Assembly (NCBI GenBank): GCA_004431415.1
Contig: QPMI01000610.1
Coordinates: 62,001-126,000 of the forward strand
From: Cyanophora paradoxa CCMP329
Lineage: Eukaryota; Plantae; Glaucophyta
Length of the DNA: 64,000 nt
Direction of reading: 5' to 3'
The notes under the pieces were generated by a model. That model did not search any database. It had not been told where the DNA came from and saw nothing but the letters and a program-made list of their open reading frames with translations. Positions within the stretch are counted from its first letter, which is position 1; each line of letters opens with the position of its first letter. A program made the translations under genes and the position numbers. Shown here piece after piece: positions 10,301-64,000 of this stretch.

Positions 10301-13300
10301 ACACCGTCAGCGCGGCGACGGGCGTGGCGCGACGCGGATCCCGCTCACCGGAACTTGATGACCTCGTGCGTCAACGTGAAGCTCGCCTCGCTCTGCGGCA
10401 GTGAGCCCGAGTAGCCCTCCTGCTGCGGCATGAAGTATCTCTGCGATCGATGTCAATGCCGGCGCCATGGAACCCACGACACACGGTGGGAAATGCTGGC
10501 CTTGGTCACGTCGAACGCGAACAGCTTTGCATACACCGCGTCCACCAGCGTCGGCACCAACGGCCCCAGAACCGGAGCAGATGCCTTAATCACCGCAATG
10601 TCGTCCGCGCTCATCTGCTCTTGCCGTAAACACAACTGCGGGAAAAGAATGCGCGAGGCGACACGGACCCCCATGAACCGCGCCAGGTACCCGAACCGGT
10701 ACGCCGAGCTCGTGTGGACTTTCTTCATGTCGATGACCTCCACGCCCGCCTCTGCCGGGCCCGACGCCGCCGCAGCCGGCATCGGCGTCGTGATCGGTGC
10801 CTCGCCCGTGTCCACCGAGTCGCAGTTCGTGTAGTGCCGGCTCGTGAAGTCGCTCTGCACCCAGAGCAGCTTCGTGAACGCCCGCACCAGCTTGTCCTTC
10901 GTCGCCTGGTCGACGACCCCCGACAGGCCCTGGAACGTCGCGATGAGGGCGTCGTTGACGTAGCCAAAGAGCGCGTTCATGTGGACGAGGTCGATCTCCA
11001 GGTTCTTGTTCCCCTGCGACGCGTCAGCGCACGCGGCTCCCGCCGTCCCCCGCCGGGCCGCACCTCCTTCCGAGTGTGGAGCTTGCCCACCCGGTCCACG
11101 TACTCGACGAGCGACCCGTCGTACTCGGATGTCACCAGCTTCACCAGGTACTTCGCGAGCTTCTCCTTGCTGCAAACACCGTCAGCGCGGTGGCGGGCGT
11201 CCCGCGACGCGGATCCCGCTCACCGGAACTTGATGATGGCGTGCGACGTCGTCAGCGCCCCTTCGGTCCCGGGCAGCTCGCCGGTGTACCCGTCCTGCTG
11301 CGGCAGGAAGTACCGCTGCACAGCCCCCGTCAGCCACGCTGCGCCGCGCCGCGCCGCGCCGGGCGGGGTGGGGGCGGCGCGGCTCGCCTTGGTCACGTCG
11401 AACGAGAAGAGCTTCGCGTAGACCGCGTCGACGAGGCCCGGCACCAGCGGGCCCAGCACGGGCGCCGAGCCCTTGATCGCCGCGATGTCCCCGGCACCGA
11501 ACTGAGCGGCCGTCAGGCACGGCTCAAGCCGTTTCTACGGCTCAAGCCGTTTCTCCGACGTTCGGCCCACTCACCTCCATGAACTTGCCCAGGTACCCGA
11601 AGCGGTATGCCGCGTTCGTGTGCACGAGCTGCGGCGCGGCCGATCAGATCGGGCGACGGTCGACGCATCGAGGGAACGGCCGAACCTTCATGTCGATCTT
11701 CTCGATGCCCGGCTCGGCGGGAGCGGCCGCCGGCGCTGGCGCGGGCAGGGCGGCAGGCGCCGATTCCGCCGCGTCGCAGACGGTGTAGTGCCGGCTCGTG
11801 AAGTCGCTCTGAATCCACAGCAGCTTTGTGAACGCACGGATGAGCTTGTCCTTGCTCGCTTGGTCCACGTTCGTCAGGCCCTGGAAGGTCGCGATGAGGG
11901 CGTCGTTGACGTAGCCGAAGAGCGCGTTCATGTGGACGAGGTCGACCTCCAGGTCCTTGTTGCCCTGCGGCACCGCGCGTCGGATGCCATGCCGCGCAAG
12001 CCCGGGGCAACAGCGCGGGCGCGCGCACCGCCTTCTTGGTGTGGACCTTGCCGACGAAGTCGACGTACTCGACGAGCGACCCGTCGTACTCGGATGTCAC
12101 CAGCTTCACAAGGTACTTCGCGAGCTTCTCCTTGCTGCGAACACCGTCAGCGCGGCGACGGGCGTGGCGCGACGCGGATCCCGCTCACCGGAACTTGATG
12201 ACCTCGTGCGTCAACGTGAAGCTCGCCTCGCTCTGCGGCAGCGAGCCCGAGTAGCCCTCCTGCTGCGGCATGAAGTATCTCTGCGATCGATGTCAATGCC
12301 GGCGCCATGGAACCCACGACACACGGTGGGAAATGCTGGCCTTGGTCACGTCGAACGCGAACAGCTTTGCATACACCGCGTCCACCAGCGTCGGCACCAA
12401 CGGCCCCAGAACCGGAGCAGATGCCTTTATCACCGCAATGTCGTCCGCGCTCATCTGCTCTTGCCGTAAACACAACTGCGGGAAAAGAATGCGCGAGGCG
12501 ACACGGACCCCCATGAACCGCGCCAGGTACCCGAACCGGTACGCCGAGCTCGTGTGGACTTTCTTCATGTCGATGACCTCCACGCCCGCCTCTGCCGGGC
12601 CCGACGCCGCCGCAGCCGGCATCGGCGTCGTGATCGGTGCCTCGCCCGTGTCCACCGAGTCGCAGTTCGTGTAGTGCCGGCTCGTGAAGTCGCTCTGCAC
12701 CCAGAGCAGCTTCGTGAACGCCCGCACCAGCTTGTCCTTCGTCGCCTGGTCGACGCCCCCCGACAGGCCCTGGAACGTCGCGATGAGGGCGTCGTTGACG
12801 TAGCCAAAGAGCGCGTTCATGTGGACGAGGTCGATCTCCAGGTTCTTGTTCCCCTGCGACGCGTCAGCACGCGGCTCCCGCCGTCCCCCGCCGGGCCGCA
12901 CCTCCTTCCGAGTGTGGAGCTTGCCCACCCGGTCCACGTACTCGACGAGCGACCCGTCGTACTCGGATGTCACCAGCTTCACCAGGTACTTCGCGAGCTT
13001 CTCCTTGCTGCAAACACCGTCAGCGCGGTGGCGGGCGTCCCGCGACGCGGATCCCGCTCACCGGAACTTGATGATGGCGTGCGACGTCGTCAGCGCCCCT
13101 TCGGTCCCGGGCAGCTCGCCGGTGTACCCGTCCTGCTGCGGCAGGAAGTACCGCTGCACAGCCCCCGTCAGCCACGCTGCGCCGCGCCGCGCCGCGCCGG
13201 GCGGGGTGGGGGCGGCGCGGCTCGCCTTGGTCACGTCGAACGAGAAGAGCTTCGCGTAGACCGCGTCGACGAGGCCCGGCACCAGCGGGCCCAGCACGGG

Positions 13301-14948
13301 CGCCGAGCCCTTGATCGCCGCGATGTCCCCGGCACCGAACTGAGCGGCCGTCAGGCACGGCTCAAGCCGTTTCTACGGCTCAAGCCGTTTCTCCGACGTT
13401 CGGCCCACTCACCTCCATGAACTTGCCCAGGTACCCGAAGCGGTATGCCGCGTTCGTGTGCACGAGCTGCGGCGCGGCCGATCAGATCGGGCGACGGTCG
13501 ACGCATAGAGGGAAACGCTGAACCTTCATGTCGATCTTCTCGATGCCCGGCTCGGCGGGAGCGGCCGGAGCTAGCACGGGCGCAGAAGCCGTCGCCGGAG
13601 CCAAGGCAATGCCGGGCGCCAGGGCTAGGGCGGATGCTGATGACGACGAGGCGAGCAGCGGCGCCGCGGGCGCGGGCGGTGGGGAGGCGAGGTTGAGGGC
13701 CGGTGCCGCAGCAGGCGTTGAGGGCGCCGCCATCGGCGACCCCGCCGACTGCGGGCTCCCCACGCCGGCGGCGCTATCGACGCGCCTCTTTTCCTTCGAG
13801 ATGGGGCGCGCGGCCACGAACGGCGGCGGCGGCTCCTCCCCGACGCTCTCCAGCTGCGCGGGGGCTTAGCTGTGGCCTCCGGTCCCAACCGGGCCCACGG
13901 GCGCCCGCACGCACCCACTTGTCCGCCTCCGCCAGCTCCGCCGGCGTGCTGCGGTCCGCGTCGATGTCGCGCTCCACGCGCGCGCTCAGCTTCGCCACCC
14001 GCGCCGCGATCGCCGCCTTGGCCTCCGCCGTCTGCGAGCCGGCGCCTTAGGCGGCACTCCGGGGCCGGCGGGGCGGGGCGGGGGCGGCGGGACGGGGGCG
14101 GCGGGGCGGACCTGCGCGGCGGGCTTGGCGGCGTACTCGGCGATCTTGGCGAGGCGGGCGTCGATGGCGGCGTCGCGGGCCTGCTTCCGGGCGATGCGGT
14201 CGCTGCCCTCGAGGACGCTGGCGAGGAGCCACTCGAGCCCGGCGCTCATCGAGCCGTTCCACTTGGTCTGGTCCGCCAGGCCGCACGCCTCGACGATGCG
14301 CACGACGGCGCCGGCGCCGGCCGCGAGCGCCTCGACCTCGGAGAGGGGCACGCAGCCGTCCAGGTCGCGCTTGGTCGCGAGCACCAGCATCGGCTTGCCC
14401 TTGAAGCGCGGGTTCGCGCCGACGCTCGCCATGACCGCCCGCGCCGCCTCCACCGACTCCTTCTTCGACGTGTCCACCGCCAGGATGCTCGCGTGCGACT
14501 TCACGAGGATCCCCAGCAGCTTCGGCGACTCGCTGTACGGCCCCCGCGCGTCGATCTTGAACTGCGCCCCGCGCGTGAGCCAGCCGCCCCCCGGGCGCCG
14601 CCGGCCGGCCCCGCGGGTCGGGCCCACCTTCAGGTACATGCCCGAGGACGCGAGCTTGGAGAGCCGGTCATTCTCTGCGGCGGATCGAGCGGCATGAGCG
14701 GCGGCCGGCGCGCGCGGACGCGGCGCCGCGGCGCTGATGGCGGGGCGCGGGTCCTCACCCTTGACAAGCTCCCTGCGGGTCACGGCGCTCCATCAGAGGC
14801 GGTCGGTGGGCAGGAGCGCAACCAACAGAGCTAACCCGAACTTGCGGAGCAGGCTGCGAACTCCGAAGCCCTTGTGAGAGGCAACGAAGATTTCGACCAG
14901 CTTGTTAGCTGTCGGCGGCACGTCGGCCGCCTTCTCCTTCTTGCTCAT
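4309..14948 (-). CDS. Arl13/Arf-like degenerate GTPase domain + 8 tandem protoglobin (sensor-type globin) domains + C-terminal coiled coil
   Basis: ATG at 14948: MSKKEK...EIFVASHKGFGVRSLLRKF...KIDARG...FKGKPMLVLATKRD...VEAC...GLEWLL. Then eight copies of YRFGYLxxFMxFxxxDIAxIK...VDAVYAKLF...YF...VGxxHT...HMNALFGY...AFTKLLWxQSD...RHY between about 13470 and 6375. Ala/Glu/Arg/Gln-rich coiled coil to a TAG at 4309. One apparent 1-nt frameshift at about 9124. Confidence 0.85.
7032..13565. repeat. Tandem array of an about 1.82-1.84 kb two-globin unit (about 3.6 copies, near-identical including introns)
   Basis: The anchor ccatgaaccgcgccaggtacccg recurs at about 7032, 8849, 10671 and 12511. Homologous ORFs start at 7916, 9739 and 11579. 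Confidence 0.95.
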
Positions 14949-29558: not shown

Positions 29559-30462
29559 ATTTCGATCTGGACCCTTTCGACCTTGAAAAGTCATGTTCAT
29601 GATTGGCTATAGGGCCCCGCCGTACGCGTCGGACTAGTATTGGTGTTGAATCATTGAATTTCACGATCAGTCTGGTTTTAGATGTTGACTCTAGAAGCAT
29701 ATCTCTGGCCCAGTGGATCTAGATATGTGACAGTGAGGGAACTCAGGGAAGGTCGCGGGCCCTGAGGAGATCTAGACGCCGTGACGTCGATCGCGACAGC
29801 CTCACATGCGCATGCATATGATCATGATCATGATGCCTGCGCGGCACCGCATGCGCAGCCATTGCAATTGAATCATGGCATTGGCTGTTCGATGGACTTC
29901 GGGAGCTCGAGTGCAACATGCATGCGCAGTGCTAGAAGAATTTCAAACGTGAACCGTGAACCCAAATTGTTTGCAAAAATCGATTGCGATTTGAATTCAT
30001 CGGATCTCAGGATAGTATCACTCAAAATTAGTACACTGAGTCACGCAACTAGTAGGCTACCGAAAGCTAACTAGAAATGATGAAAGCGAGCTGCCTGAAG
30101 CTAGCGTGGAAACGGCCTGTCATGATCACTGTGGACATCGATTGTAAAGCACACTCCGATCAAGAGGAGGCCTCATTAATGTTGTAAAACGGCCTGCCAG
30201 GCTGTCTGTCACTGAGAACATCGGTTGGAAAACACTGGCGATCAAGAGGAAACGAGAGGGTTCGCGCAGAAACGTCCTGGCGAAGGCACTGCGGCGCCAC
30301 GGGATGCACCTGGAAGCACAGGCGCGCGCAAGGCGCGGGGCTGGCCTGCCTCTCTCGCAAGGCGCGGGAAGCTTGACGTCTAGATCTAGATCTCTCTGTG
30401 CAGAAAATGGATACAGTTTTCAAAGAAGGGGGACACTGTGCAGGCTGCTGAGCGGTGGCTGG

Positions 30463-33400
30463 TCAGCGGGAGGAGCTGTAGATGGAGACGACGGAGTCGG
30501 TGGAGCCGGAGGCGAGGGTGAGGCGGTGCGGGTGGAAGGCGAGGGAGGAGACGGGCCCGATGCGCTGCCCGAGGAAGCCCTCGTGGAAGCGGATCATCGA
30601 GAGCGTCTCCCCCGCGAAGCTCATGATCTTGACGAACTGGTTCTGCGAGCCGCCCGCCAACATCGGCGCGTAGTCGTGCACCACGAAGGCCGTCATCGCC
30701 TTCTGGTGCAGCCGCATCGTCCGGTACGCCGCGCTGGCGCCGGCCCGCACGTCCCAGAACTTGACGTCGCCGGCCGCCGAGCCCGAGAGGACGGCGTGCT
30801 CCCCGCCCCGCTGGATGTGAACGCCCACGATCTTGCTCTCGCCGTGGTCCCGCAGCGCGCACCGCATCGCCAGGTGCGAGGGCACGCGCGCGTCGAAGAC
30901 GCGCAGCGAGCCGTCGCCACAGCCGGCGACGGTGACGCCGGGGGAGCCCGACTCGTCGTGCGCCATGGCCGTGACGGACGAGTCGGTGTGGACGGGGACC
31001 TCCGCCACGCACTGCTCCCGCTCCACGTCCCACACGCGCATCACCTCCGCGTCGCCCGCCGCAAGCATCAGCGCCTGCCCCGGCGGGAGGCGCCCCGTCA
31101 GAGGCGGGGGCGGGGCTGGGGCGGGGGCGGGGGCGGGAGCGGGGGCGGGGGCGGGGCGCACGTTGGCGGGCTGCCAGCAGAGGACGAGGCCGCCGACGCG
31201 GCGCGGGGCGGTGGGCGTGAGGGCCCGCCAGGCGGCGACGAGGCGCTCCTCCCCGGGGCGGGCGACCTTGCCCCAGACGCGGACCACGCCGTCGTCCGAG
31301 CCGGCGACGACCAGCGAGTGGTGGCAGTCGTTCACCAGCTGCAGCGCCGTGATCCGCGTGTGCGGCCCGTTCCCGTTGCTGCAAGCGCGCGCAGGGGCTC
31401 CAGTCAGACCGGGGCCCCCGGCAGGCAGGCGCGCCCTCCGAAAGCGGGGGAAGGGACCTGAACGAGTTGGCCTTGGCGCCCTCGTCGTAGTTCCAGACGG
31501 AGAGGCCCTCGGAGTCGTCGGCGACAACGAGGTAGGGGTCGTAGGGGTGGAAGAGCAGCTGGGTGGTCATCGAGGAGCCGTTGTCGAGCGTCGTCGTGTG
31601 CGAGTCGAGCTTGCGGCTGGTGGCCTCCTTGTGGGCGGCGTGGAACTGCGCCCGCAGCGCCTCGTTCCGCTTGTGCCGCCACCGCCGCTCCAGGTACCAC
31701 GGACTCGTCCCGTCCTCCTGCTCCTTCGGCTGCAGCAGCGGCCGGCCCCACCGCGCCGCGCTCCACTCGTACAGCGTGCTCTGCAGCGAGTCGGGGCCCG
31801 GCGCCGGGCCCGCCCCGCGGCCCACGTTGCTCGCCGCGCCGGCGCCGGCCGCCCCGCCGCGGCCCCGTTCGCGCCGGCGGCGGCCGGGTCCGCGGCGGCG
31901 CCCGAGGGCCCGGGGCGGGCCGGGGGCGCCGGAGGGCGGGCGGCGGCGGCGGCGTTCTGGGCGGCGACGGCGGCGAGGTTGGTGAGGGAGTTGTTGCGTG
32001 GCTGGCGGGAGATGCTCTGCATGTGCGGCGGCAGGCCCGGCGAGGGGCCGCCGAGGGAGCCCGAGCCCGGCGCGCCGTGGAAGTCGGCGGCCGAGGCGCT
32101 CTTCTTGATGGAGGTGGGGAAGGGGCGGCGCGGGGAGAGGCCGTTGTTGGTGGGGGGCGGGACGGGGGGCGGGGCGCCGGCGGCGGCGGCGTGGAGGGGC
32201 CCGGTGAAGGAGGAGACCTTGGGGATGGTGTTGAGGGCGGAGAGGAAGCGGGGCACGAGGGGCGGCGCGCTCCCGTCCTGCCCGGCGGCGAGGAGGCGCC
32301 GCACGACGAGGCAAGCCGTCACCGCCACCTCCGGGAGGGGGTCCCGGCACGCCCCCACGATGCCCCGCCACAGCCCGTTGTACGTCTGCGCGTGCGCCTC
32401 CGCCGTCGAGGAGGCGCCGGCGGCCGAGGAGGAGGAGGAGGAGGCGGCGGCGGCGGAGGCGGAGGGGCGGCGGCCTGCGCGGCGGCGGCCTGGGCGGCGG
32501 CCTGGGCGGCCTGCGTGCGGGCCGAGGGACCGAAGGTGGGCGCGGGGCGCTGTTGGGCGTCGAGGGCTCCGACCCGTCACCGGCGGGGCCTTGGAGGGCG
32601 CCGGCAGGCGGATGGCGATCCCGCCGGGGCGCCGGCGAACCCGCCGTTGGCGTGCGGCCCCGCCGGCTCCGAGCGCGACAGCGCGCCCGCCGCGGAGGCC
32701 CCGGCGAGTCCGGCGGGCCCGCGAGGTCCGGGTTCGAGACGGAGGGCTTGACGGCCGGCACCGGCACCGGCGCAGGGGCCGCGGCGGCGGCGGCGTGGCC
32801 GGCGTGGCCCGACCCGTGCGGCTCGCCGGAGAAGGAGTAGGCGGCGGGGCGGGGCGGGGCGGCGGCGGCGCGGGCCTCCTCCTCGAGGGCGGCGGCGAGG
32901 GCGGTCGAGGCGAGGCGGAAGCGCTCGCGGTGGCACTGCGCCATCGCCGAGAGCGCCAGCAGCGCCTCGCGCCGCACCGACGCGCACCCGTCCTCCTTGA
33001 GCACCTCCGCGAGCGCCGCGCCGATGGAGAGCTCGGTGAGGAAGCGGCGCTCGTTGCCCTCGCCGCCGCCGAAGAGGCAGCCGCAGGCGAAGGCCGCCGC
33101 GGCGCGGACCTCGGGGACGGGGTCGGCGAGGAGGGCGAGGAGCTTCTCGGGGGCGGCGTCGCGGACGGCCGTCCACTTGGCCTCCTCGAAGCCCTGCCAC
33201 ATCTTCGCCATGCAGAGCGCCACCCAGCGCCGCAGCAGCGGGTCCGGGTCCGACGCCTGCGCCAGCAGCACCGGCAGCAGGTTGTTTGAGAGCAGCGACG
33301 ACTGGCCCGGCCTGCCCGCCCGCACGCACGAGGCCGTCAGCCAAGGCCAAGGCAAGCCAGGCAGAGCTCATGCGAGCCCCGGCGGGCCCGGGCGGGGCGA

Positions 33401-35610
33401 GGCGGGGCGGACCGGAAGTTGTTGGCGATGGCGGCCAGGACGAAGGCGGCCATGGCGCGCTTCTCGGCGGGGTAGCTCTGCTGCGCCAGGAACGAGACGA
33501 AGTAGAGGGGCCCGTTGTCCTTGAGCAGGTCGCACTGGCACGAGCGGTCCAGCGCCATGACCTTGGCCCAGATGAAGACCAGGATCTGCCGCAGCTCCGG
33601 CGCCGGGCTCTGCAGCAGCTTGAGCACGTACGGGAAGATCCCCACCGAGAGCGCCTGCGGGCGGGCGCGGTCAGCCTCGTCGACGGGGCGGGGCGGGGCG
33701 GGGCGGGGCGGGCGGGGGCGGACCAGGTCGACGGCCCAGGGCCCGACGTCGAGGAAGCGGCCGAGGAGGAGGAGGGCGCGGAGGCGGTGGACTTGGGAGA
33801 GGAGGACCTGGAGGACGATGGGGAGCTGCTCCGGCGGCCGCTTCTCCTCGCTCCCGAACTCCAGCCAGACCTCGAACGCCGTCAGCTGCTCCTCGAAGAA
33901 AGGGCTGTGCTGGTACTCCGCGTTGGGGTCGGCGAGGAGCTTGGGGAGCTGGGAGAGGCAGAGCTCGGCGGCGAGGTCCCAGGCCTGCCACATGGGGTGC
34001 TGGTGCGTGGGCGGCAGCTTCGGGCAGGTGACGGGGGTGCAGTTGAGGGAGCGGAGGACGCGCTCGGCGAGGAGGAAGTTGCGGAAGAGCGAGGCGACGA
34101 GGAGGTCCTGCCGGAAGAGCTTCTGGAAGGTGCCCCGCGGCAGCGCGTTCCACGCGATCGTGTCCGTGATCGCCGTGAAGATCCAGTTCAGCTCCCCCAG
34201 CGGCGTCTTCCGGTCGTTCAGCTTGCCCGGGATCTTGTCGATCGCCTCCAGCGTCATGCTCGAGAGCAGCGGCGACCGCAGGCAGTACCACCGCAGCGCG
34301 ATCTTGATCGGCGTCGTCAGGCAGACCTGCCGCCCGTTCCCCACCCCGCGTCGGAGCCTGCCCGGGGTGGCGCGGCCGGGCCGGCGGGCGGCGGACCGTG
34401 AAGATGTCTGCGGGGTACTCGGGGTTCATGGGGAGCAGCTCGTTGGCGCCGCACGCCGCCATGAGGATCGTGTCCCGCTGCGCCGCGCTCTGCTGCGGCG
34501 CCGCCGCCGGGTTCGTCGCCAGCAGCCGCTGCGCCGCCCTCAGCAACGGGAAAGGAAACAAGAAGGAGAGAAGAGGGGGCTGACCTTGATTTCCTTCTCG
34601 CGCTGCTCCTGGAAGACCTGGAAGGCGTTGACGATCATGCCGGCGGACGAGCAGTCGAAGACGTAGATCGACGGCGTCCCCATCCACGTCTGCAGGTCAT
34701 AGATCGAAAGAGGAATGTACTGCGTAAAGTTCTGCGGGCGGGAGAACAAGGTCAGGCGGGCGGCGCGAGGGCCGAGCGGCCCGGTCAGGCGGTCGTCCGG
34801 TCAGCGCACGTTGTTGAAGACCCAGATCTCGCCATGCGGAGTCGGCCGAGGAACGCCGTGCCCGTTGTAGTGAAAAAGGACACGCTCGTCCTTCGCGTTC
34901 CTCCTGAGCGAGACGCACAGCTTCTTGACCGCGTCCAGGGTCGGGTCAAGGCACTGCTTGTAGCGCGCCTGCGCGGATTCCGTTCCGTCAGCCCCCAAAT
35001 CTCATTCGAGCACCCTCGAAGCATACCCGAGGCTGCCAGCGCTCGTAGTGGGTTTGCAGCTGCTTGCCAATCGCCTCCAGCGCCTTTTGTGGGGGCTGCT
35101 GAGTAGGATCTGCGCGGCGCGCGTCATGACCGGTAAAGAGCGTGTACAATGTTCCCAGATACGCGAAGACAGAGACGCACCCATCCAGCATTCCAGGCGA
35201 GCGCACGGCGTCGTCTTTACGACATCAGGCGGATCTACTCCGATGTTCAGGCAAAGGACAAGCGCTACGCTAACAGTCTTCATCTGCGCGGGTAACCGAC
35301 GTAAACGTGAGACGGCGCGTCGCTCCCCGTGCCGCAGGCTCGGCCTCGCCAGTCGCGACCCTAGGATCGAGAACCCCAGGCGGCGCGGCGGACGCACCCG
35401 CTCTTTCATCCGCCAGTCGAGCACGCATGGATCTTCGCCGAACATGAGCGAAGTGCCCCCGATCTCGTGCCGCTCCTCGTTGAAGAAGAGGCGTTCGGGC
35501 TCTTCGTCACCAGGGATCTCCACGGGGTAGGGAAGGAGCTCAAACGACTGCATAGGCACGTTTCCGAACTCATCTTCGCCCCCCTGCTGCCGCTCCTCTC
35601 CTTCTTCCAT
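30463..35610 (-). CDS. RAPTOR: Regulatory-associated protein of TOR (Raptor/KOG1)
   Basis: DWRMKER|[104 protein letters not shown] repeats, and a C-terminal WD40 ending [16 protein letters not shown]. Apparent indels in the GC-rich linker at about 31.9-32.7 kb. Confidence 0.97.
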
Positions 35611-41427: not shown

Positions 41428-44400
41428 ATGGCGGCACCCGCGCCGCCCGGCGGCACTGGCGGCGGCACCAAGCGATTCGTAGGTGCGCAGAGCATGAGCC
41501 CGACCACGTGTGACGTTGTCCGGGCTGAGCTGGGACACATGCGAGCTTTAGCTAATCCGGGACGAGCTTGCGATGTTGCCCCTGGGGCCCTGCTAGAATC
41601 GGCGACCGTAGCAAGGCCGATGCGCATCATGTATCAGCCGATGCTGCCTAGTCGCAACCCCTCCAGCTCCCTCCTTAGCGCCGCGCACACTCACGCCCCC
41701 GCGCTGCCGCAGACATCTTCGTTGCTTCCAACAGCGGCGCCGGCGTGCGCTCGTTGCTGCGGAGGTTCGGCGAGCTCGTCAAAGGTCGGCACCTCGCTCA
41801 GGCATCCAAGGCGTGCACCTGACCTCGCCCCAGGAAATGAGCGCCTCATGCGGCTGGCTTCAGACGGCCTGAACCTCAAAGTGCGCGCCGCCTCGGGCAG
41901 CCCGCGCCGCCCGCCGCTGACGCCGCGCCGCCGCGGCGCGTGCAGTTCAAGATCGACACGCGGGGCCCCTACGCGGACACGCCGGCGTTCCGGGCGCTCC
42001 TGGTGAAGGCCCAAGCGTGCATTCTGGTCGCGGACACGTCGCAGGAGGGCGCGGTTGCTGCGGCGAAGGCGGCGCTGGGCGCGGTCGGGGGCAACGGGCG
42101 CTTCAAGGGGAAGCCGATGCTGATCATGGCGAACAAGCGGGACGTGGACGGCTGCCTCCCGCTGGCGGACCTGGAGGCGGCGGCGGGGGCGCAGGGCGTG
42201 CTGGCGAGCACGAAGCTGGTCGAGGCGTGCGGGGCGCCCGGCGAGGCCAAGTTCAACGCGGCGATGAGCGCCGGGCTGGAGTGGCTCCTCGCCAGCGTCA
42301 TCGACGGGGCCGAGCGCCTCGCCCGGAAGCAGGCCCGCGACGCCGCCATCGACGCCCGCCTGGCCAAGCTCGCGGGGCTCGAGGGCAAGCCGCCGCCGCC
42401 GGCGGTCCCGGGGGCCGGCGTGGGCGCCCCCTCGGACCCGGGGAAGGCGGCCGAGGAGCACCGGGCGGCGATCGCGGCGCGGGTGGCGAAGCTGAGCGCG
42501 CGCGTGGAGCGCGACATCGACGCGGACCGCAGCACGCCCTCGGAGCTCGCCGCCGTGGACAAGTGGGTGCGCGCGCCTCTCCGCGGCGCCCCGGGCGGGG
42601 CGGGAGGCCGTGGCTGAGCCCCCCGCAGCTGGAGAGCCTCGGGGAGGAGCCGCCGCCGCCCTTCCTCCCCAGCCCCTCCCCCTCGCGCGCCGGCCTGGCG
42701 ACGGCGCCGGCGGCCTCGCTGGGGGGCCCCTGGAGACGAAGCCCGGGTCGGCGGGGGGCGCCGCGGGCCCGCTGGGGCGCTCGGCCTCGGTCAAGCGGCG
42801 CAGCGAGTCGCCGGCGCAGCAGCCCGGCGTCGAGCGCATCGACATGAAGGTCCGCCCCGGGCCCGCGCCGCGCCGCCCCGCCGCCCCGCCCCCCGCCCTC
42901 CCGCCCGGCTCAGCTCGTCATGATTCGTCACGGCTCAGCTCGTTCACACGGACCCAACGTACCGATTCGGGTACCTCTCCAAGTTCATGGGGGTACGCTT
43001 CGCCTGCTTGCTTCGGCGGGGCGGCGCGGCGCGTCCTGAGGGGCGCGGCGCGCGTGCAGTTCATGCCCGAGGACGTGGCGACAATCAAGGGCTCGGCGCC
43101 CGTGCTGGGCCCGCTGGTGCCGGGCCTCGTCGACGCGGTCTACGCGAAGCTCTTCTCGTTCCACGTGACCAAGGCGAGCCGCGCCGCCCCCGCCCCGCCC
43201 CGCACGGCGCGGCGCGGCGCGGCGCGGCTGACGGGGGCTGCGCAGCGGTACTTCATGCCGCAGCAGGACGGGTACACCGGCGAGCTGCCCGGGAGCGAAG
43301 GGGCGCTGACGACGTCGCACGCCATCATCAAGTTCCGGTGAGCGGGATCCGCGTCGCGACACGCCCGTCGCCGCGCTGACGGAGTTCGCAGCAAGGAGAA
43401 GCTCGCGAAGTACCTGGTGAAGCTGGTGACATCCGAGTACGACGGGTCGCTCGTCGAGTACGTCGACTTCGTCGGCAAGGTCCACACCAAGAAGGCGGTG
43501 CGGCCCGGCGGGGGACGGCGGGAGCCGCGTGCGCTGACGCGTCGCAGGGGAACAAGAGCCTGGAGATCGACCTCGTCCACATGAACGCGCTCTTTGGCTA
43601 CGTCAACGACGCCCTCATCGCGACCTTCCAGGGCCTGTCGGGGGGTGTCGACCAGGCGACGAAGGACAAGCTGGTGCGGGCGTTCACGAAGCTGCTCTGG
43701 GTGCAGAGCGACTTCACGAGCCGGCACTACACGAACTGCGACTCGGTGGACACGGGCGGCCTGTCGGAGCCACCGCCGGCCCCGCTGCCGTCGACCTCGA
43801 AGGCGGCCTCCGTGCCAGAGATCGGCGTCGAGATGATCGACATGAGGCAAGTGCACACAAACGCGGCGTACCGCTTCGGGTACCTCTCCAAGTTCATGGT
43901 GGTGCGTTCTGCTCTTGGAAGAGGCGGCTCGTGCATTGGGGGGGGCTAAGCTGATCGTCCCTTTAACTCGGTCTCGCAGTTTGGGCCGGAGGACGTGGCG
44001 GCGATCAAGGGCTCGGCGCCCGTGCTGGGCCCGCTGGTGCCGGGCCTCGTCGACGCGGTCTACGCGAAGCTCTTCTCGTTCGACGTGACCAAGGCGAGCC
44101 GCGCCGCCCCCACCCCGCCCGGCGCGGCGCGGCGCGGCGCAGCGTGGCTGACGGGGGCTGCGCAGCGGTACTTCATGCCGCAGCAGGACGGGTACACCGG
44201 CTCGCTGCCGCAGAACGAAGCGAAGTTCACAGTTTCCCACGAGGTCATCAAGTTCCGGTGAGCGGGATCCGCGTCGCGACACGCCCGTCGCCGCGCTGAC
44301 GGTGTTCGCAGCAAGGAGAAGCTCGCGAAGTACCTGGTGAAGCTGGTGACATCCGAGTACGACGGGTCGCTCGTCGAGTACGTCGACTTCGTCGGCAAGG

Positions 44401-47400
44401 TCCACACCAAGAAGGCGGTGCGCGCTGCTGCCCCGGGCTTGCGCGGCATGGCATCCGACGCGCGGTGCCGCAGGGCAACAAGGACCTGGAGGTCGACCTC
44501 GTCCACATGAACGCGCTCTTCGGCTACGTGAACGACGCCCTCATCGCGACCTTCCAGGGCCTGACGAACGTGGACCAAGCGAGCAAGGACAAGCTCATCC
44601 GTGCGTTCACAAAGCTGCTGTGGATTCAGAGCGACTTCACGAGCCGGCACTACACCGTCTGCGACGCGGCGGAATCGGCGCCTGCCGCCCTGCCCGCGCC
44701 GGCGCCGACGGCCGCTCCCGCCGAGCCGGGCATCGAGAAGATCGACATGAAGGTTCGGCCGTTCCCTCGATGCGCGACCGTCGCCCGGTCTGATCGGCCG
44801 CGCCGCAGCTCGTGCACACGAACGCGGGATACCGCTTCGGGTACCTGGGCAAGTTCATGGAGGTGAGTGGGCTGAACGTCGGGGAAACGGCTTGAACCGT
44901 GCCTGACGGCCGCCCAGTTCGGTGCCGGGGACATCGCGGCGATCAAGGGCTCGGCGCCCGTGCTGGGCCCGCTGGTGCCGGGCCTCGTCGACGCGGTCTA
45001 CGCGAAGCTCTTCTCGTTCGACGTGACCAAGGCGAGCCGCGCCGCCCCCGCCCCGCCCGGCGCGGCGCGGCGCGGCGCGGCTGACGGGGGCTGCGCAGCG
45101 GTACTTCATGCCGCAGCAGGACGGGTACACCGGCGAGCTGCCCGGGAGCGAAGGGGCGCTGACGACGTCGCACGCCATCATCAAGTTCCGGTGAGCGGGA
45201 TCCGCGTCGCGGCACGCCCGTCGCCGCGCTGACGGAGTTCGCAGCAAGGAGAAGCTCGCGAAGTACCTGGTGAAGCTGGTGACATCCGAGTACGACGGGT
45301 CGCTCGTCGAGTACGTCGACTTCGTCGGCAAGGTCCACACCAAGAAGGCGGTGCGGCCCGGCGGGGGACGGCGGGAGCCGCGTGCGCTGACGCGTCGCAG
45401 GGGAACAAGAGCCTGGAGATCGACCTCGTGCACATGAACGCGCTCTTTGGCTACGTCAACGACGCCCTCATCGCGACCTTCCAGGGCCTGTCGGGGGGCG
45501 TCGACCAGGCGACGAAGGACAAGCTGGTGCGGGCGTTCACGAAGCTGCTCTGGGTGCAGAGCGACTTCACGAGCCGGCACTACACGAACTGCGACTCGGT
45601 GGACACGGGCGAGGCACCGATCACGACGCCGATGCCGGCAGCGGCGGCGTCGGGCCCCGCCGAGGCGGGCGTGGAGGTCATCGACATGAAGAATGTCCAC
45701 ACGAGCTCGGCGTACCGGTTCGGGTACCTGGCGCGGTTCATGGGCTTCAGCGCGGACGACATTGCGACCGTGAAGGGAATCGCACCCGTGCTCGGCCCGC
45801 TGGTACCGACGCTCGTGGATGCTGTGTATGCGAAACTCTTCTCGTTCGACGTAACCAAGGCCAGTCTTTCTCGTGCTTCGTTTTGCTTCCGTGATGGATT
45901 CTGAAACCTTTCGCAGAAATACTTCATGCCTCAGCAAGAGGGTTACTCGGGCTCGCTTCCGCAAAGCGAATCGGGTCTCAGTGTATCGCACGAGATTATT
46001 CAGTACCGGTGAGATGATCTGTATCCCCCAACAAGGCGTTTCCCGGGTGTTCACATTCCGCGCAGCAAGGAGAAGCTCACCAAGTACCTGGTCAAGCTCG
46101 TCACTGCCGAGTACGACGCCGCTCTCGTGGAATACGTGGACTACGTCGGTCGGATCCACACGAAGAAGGATGTTCGTGAAGCCGCGTCGCCCTGTGAGAG
46201 CCCTGCGACCTCACCGCGTCGCGCAGGGGAACAAGAACCTGGAGATCGACCTCGTGCACATGAACGCGCTCTTCGGCTACGTCAACGACGCCCTCATCGC
46301 GACCTTCCAGTGTCTTCCTGTAGACCAGGCGAGGAAGGACAAGCTGGTGCGGGCGTTCACGAAGCTGCTGTGGATCCAAAGCGATTTCGTCAGCCGCCAC
46401 TACACTGTCTGCGACGCCGCGGAGTCGGTGCCGGCCGCCGCGTCCTCAGCCGCACCCTCCATGCCGAACCTGGGCGCCGGGCTCGAGGTGGCGCGCCTCA
46501 AGGAGCAGCTCGCGGCCGCGCAGGCCGAGGCGAAGCGGGCGCAGGAGGTGCGCGGGGGCCCGACCGCCCAGTCCGCCCCGCCCCGTCTCGGGCCCCTCAC
46601 CGCCCGTGGGCCGCGCAGGAGACGGCCTCGCTGCGTGCGGAGCTGGCGCGGGCCAAGGCCCCCGCGAGCCCCAAGGCGGGGGGCCCGGGCCTGGCGGAGG
46701 ACATCCAGGCGCGGATGTCGGCGCGGCGGCGGAGCTCCGTGGGCGGCCTCGGCGGGGAGGACGTCGCGCGCCTCGCCGACGAGGTCGCGCAGGCCAAGTC
46801 CCTCGCCGCAGCCACGCAGGCCCGCCTCGACGAGATGGTCGCCGCGCGCGTCGAGCTCGAGCGCCAGGCGCAGCAGCGCGAGGCCGCGGCGCGCGCCGAG
46901 CACGCGCGCGAGCTCGAGGAGCTGCGGCGGCGGCACGCGCGCGAGCTCGACGACGAGCGGCTGCGCTTCGCGGAGGAGCGGCGGCGCTGGGAGGGCCAGG
47001 GCGCCGACGAGGCGGCCGCCCTGCGGGGGAGCTCGAGGAGGCCCGCGCGCGGGCGGCGGCCGCCGCCGTCGAGACGGCCGACGCCCGCGCCGAGGCGGTC
47101 AGCTGCGCACGCCTCGCCGACTCCGAGGCGGCGCGGGCCAAGGAGGCCGAGGCGCGCGCCGCGGCCGCCGCGGAGGAGGCGGCGCAGGCGCGGGAGCGGG
47201 CGGCGGCGGAGCTGGCGGCGGCCCGCGAGGCCTCGGCGGCCGAGCTCTCGGCGGCGCGGCAGGAGGCGGCCAAGTCGGTGCGCGCGGGGCGGGGCGGGGC
47301 GGGGCGGGGCGGGGCGGGTCGGGGCGGTGGGAGGCGGCGTTGTTTTGACGCTGCGCGCCAGGCGTCGCTTGCCGAGGCGGCAGAGGCTAAGGCCTCGCGG

Positions 47401-50400
47401 GCGGCCGCTGATGCCGACGCGGCGCGCGCGGAGGCGGCCGCGGCGCGCAGCGAGGCCGCGGCGGCGCGGGCCGACGCGGCCGAGGCGCGGGAGGCCGCGG
47501 CGGCGGGCAGCGCGGTGAGCGCACCCCGGCGCCGGCTTCATCGCCGTCCTCCAGAATTCTGCTCCTCACCGGGAGCCGCAGAGCGCGGAGCAGGCGGCGG
47601 CGGCCGAGGCGGCGGCGGCGGCGCGGGCGGCGGCGGCGAAGGAGGTGGAAGCCGCGCGGGCGGCGGCCGAGGAGCGCGCGGAGCGGGCGCGGGCGGATAG
47701 CGAGGCGGCGCGCGCCGAGGCGAATGCCGCCCGGGCCGAGGCGGCCGCCGCGAAGGAGGCCGCTCGTCTGGTGCGGGGGCGCGCCGCGCGACGCCGGCCC
47801 CTTCTGACGCCGACGGGTCGGGCAGGCCGAGGAGGCGCGGCTGCGGCTCGAGGCGGAGCTGAAGGAGGCGCGCCAGGCCAGCGGCGGCGGCGGCGGGGGC
47901 GAGTCCTCCGACGCGAAGCAGGCGGTGCGCGCGGGCGCTGCCGGTGCACAAGCAGGCGCCCCGTCTGACCCGGCTCCGCAGGCGGAGGCGCTGCGGGTGG
48001 CGCTGCAGGAAGCGAGCGAGGCGCGGGCGGCCGTCGAGCAGGAGCTGCGGGCCGCGCAGGCCGTCGCCGCGCAGGCCGGCGCCGCCCTCGCGGTGCGTTT
48101 GCGCGGGAGGGCCGGCGGGCGGCGCGCGCCGGAGCGCCTCACCGGCGGGCGCCGCAGGGCGAGGCGGCGACGGCGCGGGCGCGGCTCGAGGCGGAGCTCG
48201 CGGCGGCGCGGGAGGAGGCGGAGGCGGAGCGCGAGCGGGCGGCGGCGGCGCTGGCGGCGGCGGAGGCGGAGGCGCGTGAGGCGCGGGCGGCGGGCGAGCG
48301 GGAGGCGGCCGGCCTGCGGGCGGCGCTGGCGGCGGCGCAGCGGGAGGCGGCGGCGGCGCGTGAGGAGGCGGCGCGCGATGTGCAGCGCGCCACCGCCGCC
48401 AGCGGCAGCACCGCGGTGCCCGGCGCCGCCTCCGCCACCCGCGCCGCCTCCGCGCGCTCTGACGCCGGTCGCGCTGCCCGCCCTCGCGCAGGCGGCCGTG
48501 GCGGAGCTGACGGGGGCGCTGGGGAAGGCGCGGGAGGAGGCGGCGCGGGCCGGAGTGCGGGCGGCGGCGGCGGAGGCGCAGGCGGAGGCGGCGAAGAAGG
48601 AGCTCGCCGAGTCGCAGGCGCGGTCGCGCGAGACCGTCGAGCGCCTGGAGCGGGAGCTGGCGGCCGCGCGCGCGGCGCGGGCCTCGGCCGCCGCCGCCGA
48701 CGCCGCCGCCCTCGAGTCGCGCCTCGCCGCCGAGCGCGAGCGCGAGCGGGCCGCCTCCGCCGCGCAGATCGCCGTCCTCGAGTCCCGGGTTCGAGCCCCC
48801 GCCGCCCCCTTCCCTCTCCCTCGCTGGGTAGGCGAGCGGGGCGGGGGCAGAGGCGGGAGCTGGAGGACCGCCTCAAGATCGTCTCCGCCCGCCCCTCGGA
48901 CGCCTCGGTGCGCTCAGCGCGGCCCGAGGGGTGCAGCCCTTTTTTCTGACGGGGCCGCCCGGGCAGACGCCGGCGGCGGCGCGGGGCCTCGAGGAGCGGC
49001 TGCAGGCGCGGGAGCGCGAGCACGCCGCCGTCGTGGCCGCCCTCCAGGCCCGCCCCGCGCCCCGCGGCGCCCTCCCCCTGTCTGACGCGCGGGCGCGCAG
49101 GAGGCGGTGGTGCGGGCGGTGGACGAGGGGGGCGGGCGGCGGTGGCGGAGCGGGAGGCGGAGCTCGGGGCGTGGCTCGAGGGCCTCGCCGCCGACGCCCG
49201 CGAGCGCCGCCTCGCCGTCCTGCGGGCCCTCGACGAGGGCGCGCCCGGCCGCCCCCGCGCCGAGGCCGAGCTGCGCGCCCTGCTCGAGGCCCTGGAGGCC
49301 GGCGTGGCGCCCCGCACGAAGGCGGCCGACGAGAAGCGGGCGACGATGCGGCGGCAGCTCGCCGAGGCGGAGCGGCAGCTCGCCGAGGAGCGCGAGGCGC
49401 GGCGGCGGGAGCGCGCGCACGCCGAGGAGCACGCGCGGCGCGTCGAGGAGAAGTGGCTCGCCCGGCTGCGCGCCGCCGACGAGGCGGTCTCGCGCGCCCG
49501 CGCCGAGGCGGAGGCGGCGGTCGCGGCCGGCGCCGGCGCGCAGGAGCGCATGCGGGAGGCCGTGACGGCGGCCGAGCGGGCGGCGGCGGGGCGGCGGGGC
49601 GCCGAGGAGGCGCACCTCTCCCTGCTCCTCGGCGTCCTCGAGGGCCGCCCGGAGGCCGGGGCCGAGCCGGGGCCGCTGCGGCCGCCCTCGTCGGGCCCGA
49701 CGCGCCGGTGGCGGTGGCGGAGGTGGCGGCGGAGGAGGCGGAGGCGCTCGAGCTCCAGCGGGCGGCGGCGGCGGCGGCGCGGCAGCTGCGCGCCGACCTG
49801 CGCGGCTGGGCGCGGGCGTACGCCGAGGCGGCGCGGGCGGGCGGGGCGGGCCCCGACCACAACGTGATCGCGGCGCACGCGTCGGCGCGGCTCGTGCGCC
49901 TGCGCGAGGCCGAGGCCCGCGAGGCCGGCTACGCCGCCCGCGTCCGCGCCCTCCGCGACCGCCTCGCCGCCTCCGCCGCCGCCGCCGCCGCCGCCCTCGT
50001 CCGCAGCGGCCTGCTCGGCGGGCCCGGCCCGGCGGCGGCGGCGGCGGCAGTGCCGCCCCGGCCACGGCGGACGGGGACCCGCAGCGGCTGCGGGCGGCGG
50101 CGGACGCGGAGGCGGCGCGGTTGGAGGGGTACCGCGTGGAGCGGGCGCGCCTCGAGGCGGACGTGCAGCGGCTGCGGCACGCGGCGATGGCCGCCGCGAG
50201 CGAGTGGCGCGCCGCCGGCTTCGGCGGCGGGGGCAAGAAGCGCGGGCACTACCGTCCGGCGGCCGCCGCCCCCGAGCCCCTGCTCGCCACCGCCCCCTCC
50301 TCCCTCTACGCCTCCGCCTCCGCGCCCCTCCTCGCCCCCGCCCCGGCCCCCGCCCCGGGCCTCGGCTCCTCCCCCTCTGCCCCGGCCCTGCCGCACCTCC

Positions 50401-50648
50401 CCGCGCGGGCCCTGCCCCCCATCATCGGGTCCCCGCACTCGCCGGAGCCGGACGCGGCCGCCGGGGCGGGGGCGTGGGCCGTCCACACCAAGGGCGGGGC
50501 GGGCCCGCACGCCCTCGGGCACGCGCACGCCCTCCCCCCGCGGGCCCTCGCCGCGGGGACGGTCTCGCCCCTCCGCGGGGGCAAGTCCCGCAGCCCCTCC
50601 CCGCCCCCGCTGGCCGCCGCCCCCGCCGGCCACGTCGCTGCGCGGTGA
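41428..50648 (+). CDS. Arl13/Arf-like degenerate GTPase domain + 4 tandem protoglobin domains + long coiled coil (paralog of 4309-14948)
   Basis: MAAPAPPGGTGGGTKRFV|DIFVASNSGAGVRSLLRRF...KIDTRG...FKGKPMLIMANKRD...VEAC...GLEWLL. Globin domains at about 42940-43735, 43850-44655, 44810-45590 and 45690-46405. Ala/Glu/Arg coiled coil from 46480 to 50200, with apparent 1-nt indels near 47030, 49670 and 50050. TGA at 50648. Confidence 0.85.
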
Positions 50649-52055: not shown

Positions 52056-54794
<2,739 letters not shown>

Positions 54795-61800: not shown

Positions 61801-64000
61801 TGAGCGAGGGCGGGGCCGGGCGGGGCGGGACGGGCGGGCGGGCCCTCGGCGCCGATCTTGCAGGAGGCGAGGTTCAGCGTCGCGAGCGTCCGCTGCGAGC
61901 GCAGCACGCCGGCAATCGCCTGGAAGCCTGCGCCGCCCCTCAGAGGCCGGGAGGAGGCGCCGGGGCGGAGGGGGGGCGGGCGGGCCGAAGACGGTGGTGG
62001 TGCAGGAGGCCATGACGAGCTCGGTGAGGGAGCCGTTGCGGGCGAGCATGCCGGCGAGGGCCTGCGCGCCGCTGTCCAGCAGGTGGTTCCGCCCCATCGT
62101 CAGCTTCTTCACCCCCCGGCTCTCCTTCAGCGCGTCGCAGATCGCGAAGATGCCTGCGCGCCGCCGCGTCGGAAATCGACCCGGCCGCGCTGGAGGCGCT
62201 CCGGGGCGCACCGCCCTCGCCGAGGTGGCAGTAGTCGAGGTCGAGGGCCGTCAGCTGCGCCCCGTCAGGGCGGGAGGGGCAGAGGGCGCGGGGGAGAGGG
62301 CGGGGCGGGGCGCCTGGCGGGAGGAGCGGACGCCCTCGGAGACGCCGTGCGCGTCGGCTGGGGAGCAGCCGAGGCCGGCGAGCGGGAGGGAGCCGGCGCG
62401 GTCCATCAGGAGCGCCCACGCCGGCGCCAGGCTCATGTGCTCGACCGCCCGCGCCATGTCCCGGCTCTTGCGGTCGAACCAGCGCCCCGCCTCGCCGCCC
62501 CGCGCCGCCGCGTGCGCCTTCTCGACGAAGACCGCCGCGAGCCGCCGGTGCCACGCCCCGTCCCGCTCCGCCCACCCGGGCACCTGCTTCTCCTGCGCCG
62601 CCGCCCGCCCGCCCGCCCGGCTCGGCTCGGGGCGCGGACGCGAGCGAAGAGCTCCAAAAGCGCACGGGGCGGAGGTGCTCGCAGTGGGCGGCCACGGCGA
62701 AGTCGGGGCAGGCGGCCGGGCACTGGCAGAGGTACCGCCCCCGCACCGCCTGCCACGCGAGTGGGCGAGTGGGGCGGGGCGGGGCGGGCGGAAGGGGCGC
62801 ACGCGGGCGACGGCGGCGTGGCGGAGGGCGTAGTAGTCGCCGTCGGGCCCCGGGGCGCGGCGGTGGCAGAGGGCGGCGACGCCGGCGTGCCAGGCGGTCG
62901 CCCACGCGGCGGCGGCCTGGGGCCCCGCGGCGGCGGCGGCGTCGCGCTCGGCGATGCCGGCGCGAGAGAGGGCGAGGACGGAGAGGATGGCGGCGGCGGC
63001 CTCGCGCCCGACGGCCGCCTCGACGCGCTCGAGCAGCGCCTGCACGGCCGCCTGCACCGTCCCGGGGCAGCGCCCGGCGTCCCCGCCCGAGAAGCGCACG
63101 AGGGCCTGGGCGAGGGCGAGGAAGAGCGGGAGGCCGCCGTCGGGGCGCCGGGCGAGCCCCGCGGCGTCCCCGGCCCACGGGTCGGCGCGGCGGGGGCCCC
63201 AGGGCAGGCCCGAGGCGGCGGCGGCGGCGAGAAGCGCCCCCGCCTCGCCCTCGGCGCGGCGCTCGAGCTGGACGAGGGCGGCGCGCTTGGCCTGCGCGGC
63301 GCGGAGCAGCGCCCCGCGGGAGGCGTCGACGGCGACGAGGAAGTGGACGTGGCTCGGGGCCCCCTCGATGGGGAGCCAGTCGAGGGAGTCGCCGGCGCCG
63401 AGCTCATCGGCGCCGTCCACGACGACGAGCACGGGCGCCCCGTGCGGGAGCTCCTGGCAGAGCCGCGCCGCCGCCTCCGCCAGCTCCTCCGCCTCGTTCG
63501 CCGGCGGCACGTCCGTCTCCGGCAGGCCCAGAATCGCCGCCAGCTGCAGGCAGACCCGCCTGCGCCGGCGCAGGTCAGCGCGAGAGGGCGCGGGGGGTGC
63601 GCGGCGGGGCGCACCGGAGGGCGTGGGGGACGGAGGGCGCGCGCGCGCAGGCCTCGGGGAAGTAGGCCGCCACCGCGCCCCAGCCCGAGCTACGGGGGGT
63701 ACCAGCGTCAGGGGATGAGGTGGGGGTGAGGACCACGGGTACGCGTACCCGGGCTGCCAGGCGTCGACGCAGAGGCGAGCGAGGAGGGAGGTCTTGCCGG
63801 CGCCGGCCTCGCCGGCCAGCAGGGTGCAGCGCGCCTGCGCCGCCCGCTGCCAGACCGACTGGACCGTCGCCGCGCCGCCGGAGGGGACGTAGTGGCGCGC
63901 GGCGGCGGCCGCCCAGCGCCGCATTTCCCGCTCGTCCCGCACCACGTCGTCGTCCGGGTCCTGCGCCCCGCGGCCGCTCAGCTGGGCGCCGGGCGGGCGG
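58889..64000 (-). CDS. NACHT/STAND P-loop NTPase + RNI-like leucine-rich repeats (NLR-like); 5' end outside the window
   Basis: Walker A LLAGEAGAGKTSLLARL, Walker B VLVVVDGADEL, LDWLP, GLPLFL. Many 28-aa LRR exons follow (LTALDLDYCHLGEG, LATLNLASCKIGAEG, LRELVLCGNKFNDDG, LDLSENRVGDRG, LRKLDLASNGLTDD). Ends KFFFECDFY*. Confidence 0.85.

Follow-up and report, generated by a model that had tools for sequence, protein, structure and literature searches.

The stretch of DNA considered here comprises 64,000 nucleotides of contig QPMI01000610.1 from the glaucophyte alga Cyanophora paradoxa CCMP329 (positions 62,001 to 126,000 of the forward strand; hereafter the window, with all coordinates counted from its first letter). 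It is GC-rich eukaryotic DNA with short introns, and it carries two genes in which a GTPase-like head is followed by a string of globin domains. Gene B, at 41428-50648 on the plus strand, corresponds to the public C. paradoxa model tig00021348_g20532 (g20532.t1, EukProt EP00741; 2207 amino acids) and runs from a degenerate Arf/Arl-like head through four protoglobin domains to a helical tail of about 1,050 amino acids. Gene A, at 14948-4312 on the minus strand, corresponds to tig00021348_g20525 (g20525.t1; 2594 amino acids) and has a weak Arf-family head, eight protoglobin domains and a helical tail. The two genes stand head-to-head, with 26.5 kb between their 5' ends. An earlier, sequence-only reading of gene B had proposed that it carries four globins and that a second gene of the same Arl-globin-helical-tail layout lies on the opposite strand about 26 kb away, with a diverged Arl domain and an apparently unrelated tail, the longer of the two being that of gene B. 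All of this is borne out, the layout by Pfam, a motif scan and the public models. Pfam places four stretches of Protoglobin (PF11563) in g20532 and eight in g20525, along with a weak N-terminal Arf match in each, and the scan of a six-frame translation of the window found exactly 12 globin modules and no extra fragments.

The g20532 protein could be placed exactly on 41620-50645 of the plus strand, in about 31 exons. Throughout, database searches and fold predictions used single exons as queries, and full-length work used the public models g20532 and g20525. When exon 45428-45880 served as the query of a library-wide HMMER search, it gave one very strong match, g20532 (E = 6e-281), and a word search with g20532 among 5.8 billion proteins returned g20525 as the sole other protein of comparable length. 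Two Trinity transcripts are given to g20532 in supplementary file 5 of the Cyanophora genome paper (Price et al. 2019, PMC6704402), with uninterrupted frames of 370 and 423 amino acids and with best matches in Planctomyces and Gemmata. Since genomic frames in the array are at most 158 amino acids long, these transcripts must be spliced mRNAs, and together with the BRAKER model they support g20532 as a real gene. Both public models are likely to contain errors. Globins are not mentioned in the genome paper (Price et al. 2019), and no description of this gene was found in the literature on Cyanophora and glaucophyte globins or on multi-domain globins.

The modules were named B1-B4 in gene B (42939-46406) and A1-A8 in gene A (13466-6370), and all 12 were brought into one alignment. 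They are of three types, alpha, beta and gamma, which are common to both genes and follow the same order. The features of the arrays are as follows, with divergence at synonymous sites abbreviated as dS.

42939-43847, plus strand: module B1 (alpha) with its linker; the first exon and intron and the linker are old and appear unconverted (80% and random-level identity).
43848-44808, plus strand: module B2, an alpha/beta chimera by segment trees and site scoring, with linker intron 44753-44808.
44809-45691, plus strand: module B3 (alpha), 96.5-96.8% identical to A1, A3, A5 and A7 with introns included; dS 0.039.
45692-46439, plus strand: module B4 (gamma, terminal, without intron 1), 94.7% identical to A8; dS 0.070.
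43174-43245, 44094-44165, 45032-45098 and 45860-45916, plus strand: GC-AG second introns of gene B, by model mapping, with eight equivalents in gene A.
6297-13581, minus strand: globin array of gene A, modules A1-A8, by self-BLAST, motif scan and alignment.

Gene A reads alpha-beta three times and then alpha-gamma (A1-A8), and gene B reads alpha-beta-alpha-gamma (B1-B4). Among the alpha modules, A1, A3, A5 and A7 are 99.5-99.9% identical to one another, B3 is 96.5-96.8% identical to them and B1 88.6-88.9%. The beta modules of gene A (A2, A4 and A6) are mutually 99.4-99.6% identical, with B2 at about 87%, and the two gamma modules, A8 and B4, are 94.7% identical. The gamma modules lack intron 1 in both genes, and in both genes a linker intron is limited to the junctions that lead from beta to alpha.

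The second intron has an uncommon form in all 12 modules, as it opens with a GC donor (AAG|GCGAGC, GCCAGC or GCCAGT) and is of the GC-AG class. This reading is supported by homology, since with the GC donor the motif ahead of helix C retains a Thr that does not vary among 16 relatives. The GC-AG intron thus appears to be real and to have been copied along with the module.

PF11563 scores 453 bits on g20532 over four stretches, the best of which covers model positions 2-153 of 158 (the cut-off is 25 bits), and single globin exons alone also match the family. The proximal (F8) His, within V-G-K/R-V/L/I-H-T, is present in every one of the 12 modules, and in a 16-sequence profile it lines up with the region of the proximal His in 2W31 and 2VEB; the B10 Tyr, within A-V-Y-A-K, is likewise present in 12 of 12. 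Because both residues are retained throughout, each protein probably displays four or eight sites for haem along a helical scaffold that is joined to a GTPase-like head.

The central observation is that the arrays of the two genes are far more alike than the heads to which they are joined. By self-BLAST they form an inverted repeat (6337-9791 against 46439-42936, 90.2% identity over 3.5 kb) in which array B is colinear with A5-A8, and module by module they are 87-97% identical between the genes. The heads are 74.6% identical over 768 nucleotides and 59% identical as proteins. Values of dS were counted exon by exon and then summed; the comparisons A8-A6, A7-A8 and B3-B4 were discarded for mispaired exons (gamma has four exons, the other types five). 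The values retained are these:

Arl head, gene A against gene B: dS 0.45.
B3 against A7: dS 0.039.
B4 against A8: dS 0.070.
B1 against A7: dS 0.096.
B2 (chimeric) against A6: dS 0.30.

The synonymous contrast between the head and B3 plus B4 gave a Fisher p of 1.7e-14, and the ratio of nonsynonymous to synonymous divergence (dN/dS) in the globins is 0.2-0.6. The sequence-only reading had suggested setting the dS of the Arl part against that of the globin part, and the outcome, 0.45 against 0.039-0.096 (0.30 for the chimeric B2), falls on the side that it expected.

The introns show the same contrast. From the third intron of B2 onward, the introns of A5-A8 and B1-B4 are 85.5-100% identical, several of them 98-100% (z = 9-11 against shuffled sequences). 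The head introns, the Pro/Ala linker (z = 1.8), the intron before the first module, the first intron of B1, the opening 300 nucleotides of the tail and the 5' flank score no higher than shuffled controls (z of -0.5 to 1.8); one head intron is an exception at z = 3.6, the others having z of at most 1.2. The sequence-only reading had called the globin modules near-identical, introns included, and had pointed to 45570-46430 and the reverse complement of 6360-7220. The high similarity and its extension into the introns stand, but near-identical is too strong for that stretch, where 38 mismatches and one gap over 847 nucleotides leave an identity of 95.3%.

The similarity is very unevenly spread. 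Perfect sub-tracts of 100-209 nucleotides occur between the arrays of the two genes, and the number of differences per 100 nucleotides is 0-4 at 44236-45235 and 2-10 in gamma and leaps from about 5 to 47 at 46436, where the last globin ends, so that the homogenised region has a sharp 3' boundary at 46436-46439. One tract stands out as apparently the most recently shared between the genes:

44236-45235, plus strand: 22 differing positions in 1,000 nucleotides against gene A 8547-7539, spanning four introns.

Old divergence is kept inside array B, namely in the first exon and intron of B1, the B1-B2 linker and the first intron of B2, and the survival of these stretches speaks against a recent wholesale replacement of array B. 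The diverged head in turn holds two perfect runs between the genes, found by a scan for exact matches, of 75 nucleotides (42464-42538 against 14017-13943) and 43 nucleotides (42319-42361). The exon piece with the 75-nucleotide run has a dS of 0.158, against 0.42 for the head core, and the two runs may be micro-conversion tracts or may reflect constraint at the RNA or DNA level in the helix after the G domain.

Trees built from exon columns and from intron columns group the modules by type across the genes. The strict clustering by gene that the sequence-only reading had held to be contrary to its claim did not occur. The shape of these trees is in itself no argument for conversion, since plain orthology also gives a grouping by type; the argument comes from the divergence contrast. 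It is the difference in age between array and head, seen in dS and in the introns, that speaks for exchange rather than constraint or orthology.

Individual modules are mosaics. When each column that separates the alpha from the beta modules of gene A was scored, B2 proved to be of alpha type across exon 2 and intron 2 and into exon 3, and of beta type from intron 4 to its end, where it is 95-100% identical to A6 and the other beta modules of gene A. In trees of separate segments, columns 150-345 of B2 group with alpha (support 99/99), with the beta placement rejected by the approximately unbiased (AU) test at p = 0.003, and columns 600-860 group with beta (support 97/95). In both B1 and B3, the end of intron 3 and exon 4 form a patch of beta type; of the 21 polymorphic ungapped sites that distinguish B3 from A7, 10 are due to it. 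Over alignment columns 300-840 (about 500 nucleotides), B1 and B3 match each other at about 100%. A Sawyer-type permutation of 267 polymorphic sites was significant (p at most 6e-4) in 8 of 21 module pairs, and the significant pairs between genes include A7-B2, A6-B2, A6-B1 and A6-B3.

Gene A adds a younger layer to this picture. Its three alpha-beta units of 1.8 kb are 99.4-99.9% identical with their introns included, and the three units together with A7 differ by about 12 single-base changes and five or six indels in 1.84 kb. Each unit has private variants. Units 1 and 2 share two alpha intron indels, with units 3 and 4 in the alternative state, and the beta module of unit 2 groups with that of unit 3; because variants are shared in such conflicting patterns, the units are themselves mosaic, as expected from repeated unequal exchange. 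By sequence, this near-identity shows recent amplification rather than present-day polymorphism, and as an evolutionary matter it supports the accordion-like change in domain number that had been proposed.

Module A5 has two single-base homopolymer deletions that are unique to it, one at about 9125, which breaks the frame in exon 5, and one at about 9214, in intron 4. The public model g20525 bypasses the break by an invented intron of 53 nucleotides (9135-9083), which removes part of the globin. The break may reflect a real, crippled domain or an error in the PacBio consensus; the latter is suggested by the way the consensus was made, from RSII reads that were polished with Quiver and then corrected with short reads at 95% identity.

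The best explanation for these observations, and one that we hold with good confidence, is an old inverted duplication that was followed by repeated short gene conversions within and between the arrays and, recently, by amplification in gene A. The ancestral gene would have had an Arl-like head, at least one alpha-beta-alpha-gamma string of protoglobins and a helical tail. An old, inverted, head-to-head duplication would have given rise to genes A and B, after which heads, tails, linkers and their introns would have been free to diverge. The arrays, in contrast, would have been homogenised repeatedly by non-allelic gene conversion, in tracts of about 0.1-1 kb, both within and between the genes, with exchange between genes proceeding in an inverted-repeat configuration since the two arrays are mutually inverted. 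Within each array, several kilobases of repetitive homologous sequence are open to such exchange. Unequal crossing-over would then, very recently, have amplified the 1.8-kb alpha-beta unit in gene A and taken it from about four domains to eight. Conversion and unequal exchange as the mechanism, and the order of these events, are what we infer from the divergence contrast, the intron identity, the mosaic modules and the near-identity of the gene A units. The confinement of exchange largely to the globin arrays, as the sequence-only reading had it, is supported by the contrasts in dS and introns, the mosaic modules and the permutation test.

Several points weigh against this explanation. Conversion is read from one haploid assembly, with neither an outgroup species nor a second strain beside it, and the arrays are repetitive, which is where a PacBio RSII consensus, and its correction by short reads at 95% identity, can be trusted least; A5 has two homopolymer deletions. 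For columns 600-860 of B2, the AU test against an alpha placement is only borderline (p = 0.07), and the mosaic was already known when the module groups for the AU tests were defined. Uneven constraint can be part of the reason why concordant sites come in runs. In addition, the two Trinity transcripts might derive from gene A instead of gene B.

A simpler history would have the whole 3.5-kb array copied over in a single large and fairly recent event, by conversion or a double crossover, with ordinary divergence thereafter. This would account for the coincidence of the high-identity region with the array and its sharp end at 46439, as well as for the colinearity of module order with A5-A8 at 90.2% identity. 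Such an event predicts uniform divergence, however, and the observed values rise from 0-2% per 100 nucleotides at 44236-45235 to 5-10% in gamma, while the first intron of B1 and the B1-B2 linker are no more alike than random sequence. Nor does it explain why B2 is chimeric relative to both types or why B1 equals B3 within gene B, and we regard a single event as unlikely.

An artefact of assembly or polishing, in which the similarity or the counts of eight and four domains stem from mis-assembled repeats or from read correction across arrays, deserves mention given how the genome was made (RSII reads assembled with Canu 1.0, polished with Quiver and corrected with Illumina data at 95% identity) and given the broken frame of A5 and a clash of frames at 42629-42672 in gene B. 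The heads, tails and linkers differ, though, and 27 kb of unique genes lie between genes A and B, which speaks against a palindromic read artefact. The 15-kb inserts exceed the length of either array (3.5 kb in gene B, 7.3 kb in gene A), and each unit of gene A has its private variants. Mis-mapping needs reads that are at least 95% alike, so polishing cannot make a dS of 0.04 in one place and 0.45 in another, and an artefact seems very improbable as the source of the pattern. Least tenable is the idea that there was no exchange and that stronger purifying selection and codon bias act on the globins than on head and tail: the dN/dS of 0.2-0.6 and the retained haem-ligand residues fit it, but the module introns are as similar as the exons (85-100%) while the head introns sit at the shuffled level, and selection on protein cannot yield a roughly ten-fold difference at synonymous sites between head and globins.

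Outside the arrays, the features of the two genes are as follows.

41428-41482, plus strand: the exon with which the coding sequence of gene B probably begins; its GT donor is at 41483, and the acceptor that it joins precedes 41713.
41713-42566, plus strand: head of gene B, Arf/Arl-like and degenerate in its P-loop, in exons 41713-41786, 41836-41880 and 41946-42566.
42567-42938, plus strand: Pro/Ala-rich linker from the head to the first globin of gene B; the gene model is uncertain here.
46440-50648, plus strand: Ala/Glu/Arg-rich helical tail of gene B, in about 14 exons in the public model, with the stop codon at 50646-50648.
13915-14948, minus strand: Arl-like head of gene A, by model mapping.

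The start of gene B probably lies upstream of where the public model puts it. When exon 41428-41482 is joined in phase to 41713-41786, the product can be followed in register along the gene A N-terminus (K-x-V-D/E-IFVAS...), across the first strand and the P-loop region, and the first exon of g20532 (41620-41650) has no counterpart in gene A. For this reason the public first exon is probably wrong, and the ATG at 41428, which had been favoured earlier, is on sequence grounds probably the better candidate for the true start than the one at 41620. The head of gene A has two introns more than that of gene B, one inside ...FG|ELVK... and one where gene B has a single large exon.

The match of the head to the Arf family is marginal. 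PF00025 scores 23.9 bits on the large exon 41946-42566 alone (cut-off 22.3) and 19.7 bits, under the cut-off, on the whole of g20532, and against PDB sequences the best values are those of Chlamydomonas Arl3 (E = 7e-5) and Arl13B (E = 9e-3). A word search among proteins of 114-362 amino acids found no relatives of the head exon. With a Pfam score at or below threshold and no relative in the word search, the head can be called Arl-like but not assigned to a subfamily. The G1 P-loop consensus GxxxxGK[S/T] is replaced by S-N-S-G-A-G-V-R-S in gene B and by S-H-K-G-F-G-V-R-S in gene A, so that the Lys and the Ser/Thr are absent from both. G3 reads D-T-R-G-P, in which Asp and Gly are retained and the catalytic Gln of switch II has become Pro, and at G4, gene B has N-K-R-D and gene A has T-K-R-D. 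Because the P-loop has neither Lys nor Ser/Thr and the switch-II Gln is Pro, the head is best described as an Arf-like fold that probably does not cycle GTP.

Between the head and the first globin, gene B contains a clash of frames (42629-42672, within 42567-42849). The acceptor of gene A type at 42629 yields a conserved exon start, 97% identical to gene A over 32 nucleotides, but the frame is then closed by a stop codon. In the public model the acceptor is that at 42673, 44 nucleotides downstream and in another frame. The clash is either a one-base indel of the assembly or a real shift of the acceptor.

The tails show no sign of common origin by the searches made. That of gene B has 1053 amino acids and that of gene A 552, and BLASTP found no homology between them (E > 0.8); matches by tblastx and blastn were compositional only and not colinear. 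The tail of gene B, which consists of 36% Ala, 13% Glu and 12.5% Arg, matched no Pfam family, and the AlphaFold2 model of a 160-amino-acid tail exon (49157-49636) is almost all helix (residues 2-26, 29-124 and 128-159), with a predicted local distance difference test score (pLDDT) of 85.

Two other features of the window were seen. A Raptor-like gene, with HEAT repeats and a Raptor N-terminal caspase-like domain, lies between genes A and B on the minus strand (30386-35610). A direct repeat of a unit of about 200 bp, at 95% identity, was found by self-BLAST at 53935-54269 and 54138-54462.

Polymorphism in copy number and inversion of the intervening segment are plausible, and any inversion between the globin arrays would also move the Raptor-like gene (30386-35610). 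A bolder idea, to which we give little credence, is that the inverted arrays act as a recombination switch in which a crossover flips the 27-kb segment that carries both Arl heads. If so, head A would come to stand in frame with array and tail B, and head B with array and tail A; crossovers between non-equivalent modules would redistribute the 12 globins, for instance from 8+4 to 6+6; and cultures or strains would contain mixtures of head, globin number and tail.

Taken together, the two genes show that the union of an Arl-like head, several protoglobins and a coiled coil is a small family in two forms, with four or eight haem domains and different tails, and not a one-off fusion. In the searches made, this architecture was found only in Cyanophora. 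The maintenance of two forms argues for a function, and genes A and B offer two natural variants for comparing haem binding and localisation. As twelve intron-bearing modules of three types, placed in two inverted genes and with clear old and young tracts, the pair is also a compact natural experiment on the gain, loss and homogenisation of domains in multi-domain proteins.

The closest comparison is that of the two genes with each other. They share their architecture, the three module types and their order, the GC-AG second intron and a degenerate P-loop; gene A differs in having eight globins, an unrelated tail half as long and one module with a broken frame. Among GTPases, the head of gene B resembles the ciliary Arf-like proteins Arl3 and Arl13B (PDB 5DE3 and 5DI3) in the NKxD motif and the overall order of the G domain, and Arl13B likewise has no catalytic Gln; the difference lies in the P-loop Lys and Ser/Thr, which are missing in Cyanophora.

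As for the globins, each module matches PF11563 almost end to end, the family of single-domain protoglobins and S-family sensor globins whose solved examples are the globin domain of a Geobacter globin-coupled sensor (2W31) and Methanosarcina protoglobin (2VEB). Known proteins of this family carry a single globin, which stands by itself or precedes a transmitter domain, whereas the Cyanophora proteins have four or eight between a GTPase-like head and a helical tail, and an Arf domain or second protoglobin was found in none of the 10 longer protoglobin relatives scanned. The nearest relatives of the modules are single-domain proteins of 190-270 amino acids from planctomycete-type metagenome-assembled genomes, together with a C. 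paradoxa paralogue, tig00000900_g5395. The closest of the planctomycete-type proteins have 190-205 amino acids and reach up to 67% identity over half a module. With exon 45401-45859 as the query, a word search gave bacterial-type protoglobins only, none above 67% identity, and an exact look-up of the g20532 protein in contigs gave no match. In a tree of 150 protoglobins, which came from a quick search and is to be taken as a lead only, all Cyanophora modules form one clade (96) whose sister is the single-domain g5395 (99), and this larger clade falls within a group of proteins of 190-200 amino acids that includes the planctomycete sequences from metagenomes, apart from the group of Physarum, Naegleria and chytrids. 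The globin family may be of bacterial origin, with internal amplification afterwards.

Several globin domains in one polypeptide are known from animals, such as the nine-domain globins of Artemia and the four-domain globins of Branchipolynoe, in which the domain was duplicated in tandem with its introns and short linkers join the copies. Multiple globin domains in one chain are what they share with Cyanophora. The animal proteins are of the M-family and are mostly extracellular oxygen carriers without a GTPase head or coiled coil, while those of Cyanophora belong to the sensor/protoglobin lineage in a unicellular alga. Such multi-domain ('polymeric') animal haemoglobins have been reviewed (PMC4503718).

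The process proposed here for Cyanophora is textbook concerted evolution, and it is the gene family that is unusual. Concerted evolution by gene conversion is familiar from the human alpha- and gamma-globin pairs and from the Y-chromosome palindromes, in which one arm converts the other. The likeness lies in a bounded tract that is alike in both copies with introns included, in diverged flanks and in mosaic sequence, and the copies of the Y palindromes are inverted too. In Cyanophora, the tract has a dS of 0.04-0.10 against 0.45 in the head, and the mosaic and its incongruent trees are seen in B2 and in the permutation test. What sets the Cyanophora genes apart from these systems is that the converted unit is a domain module, present 12 times over two genes, that conversion would act within genes as well as between them, and that it would be coupled to change in the number of domains.

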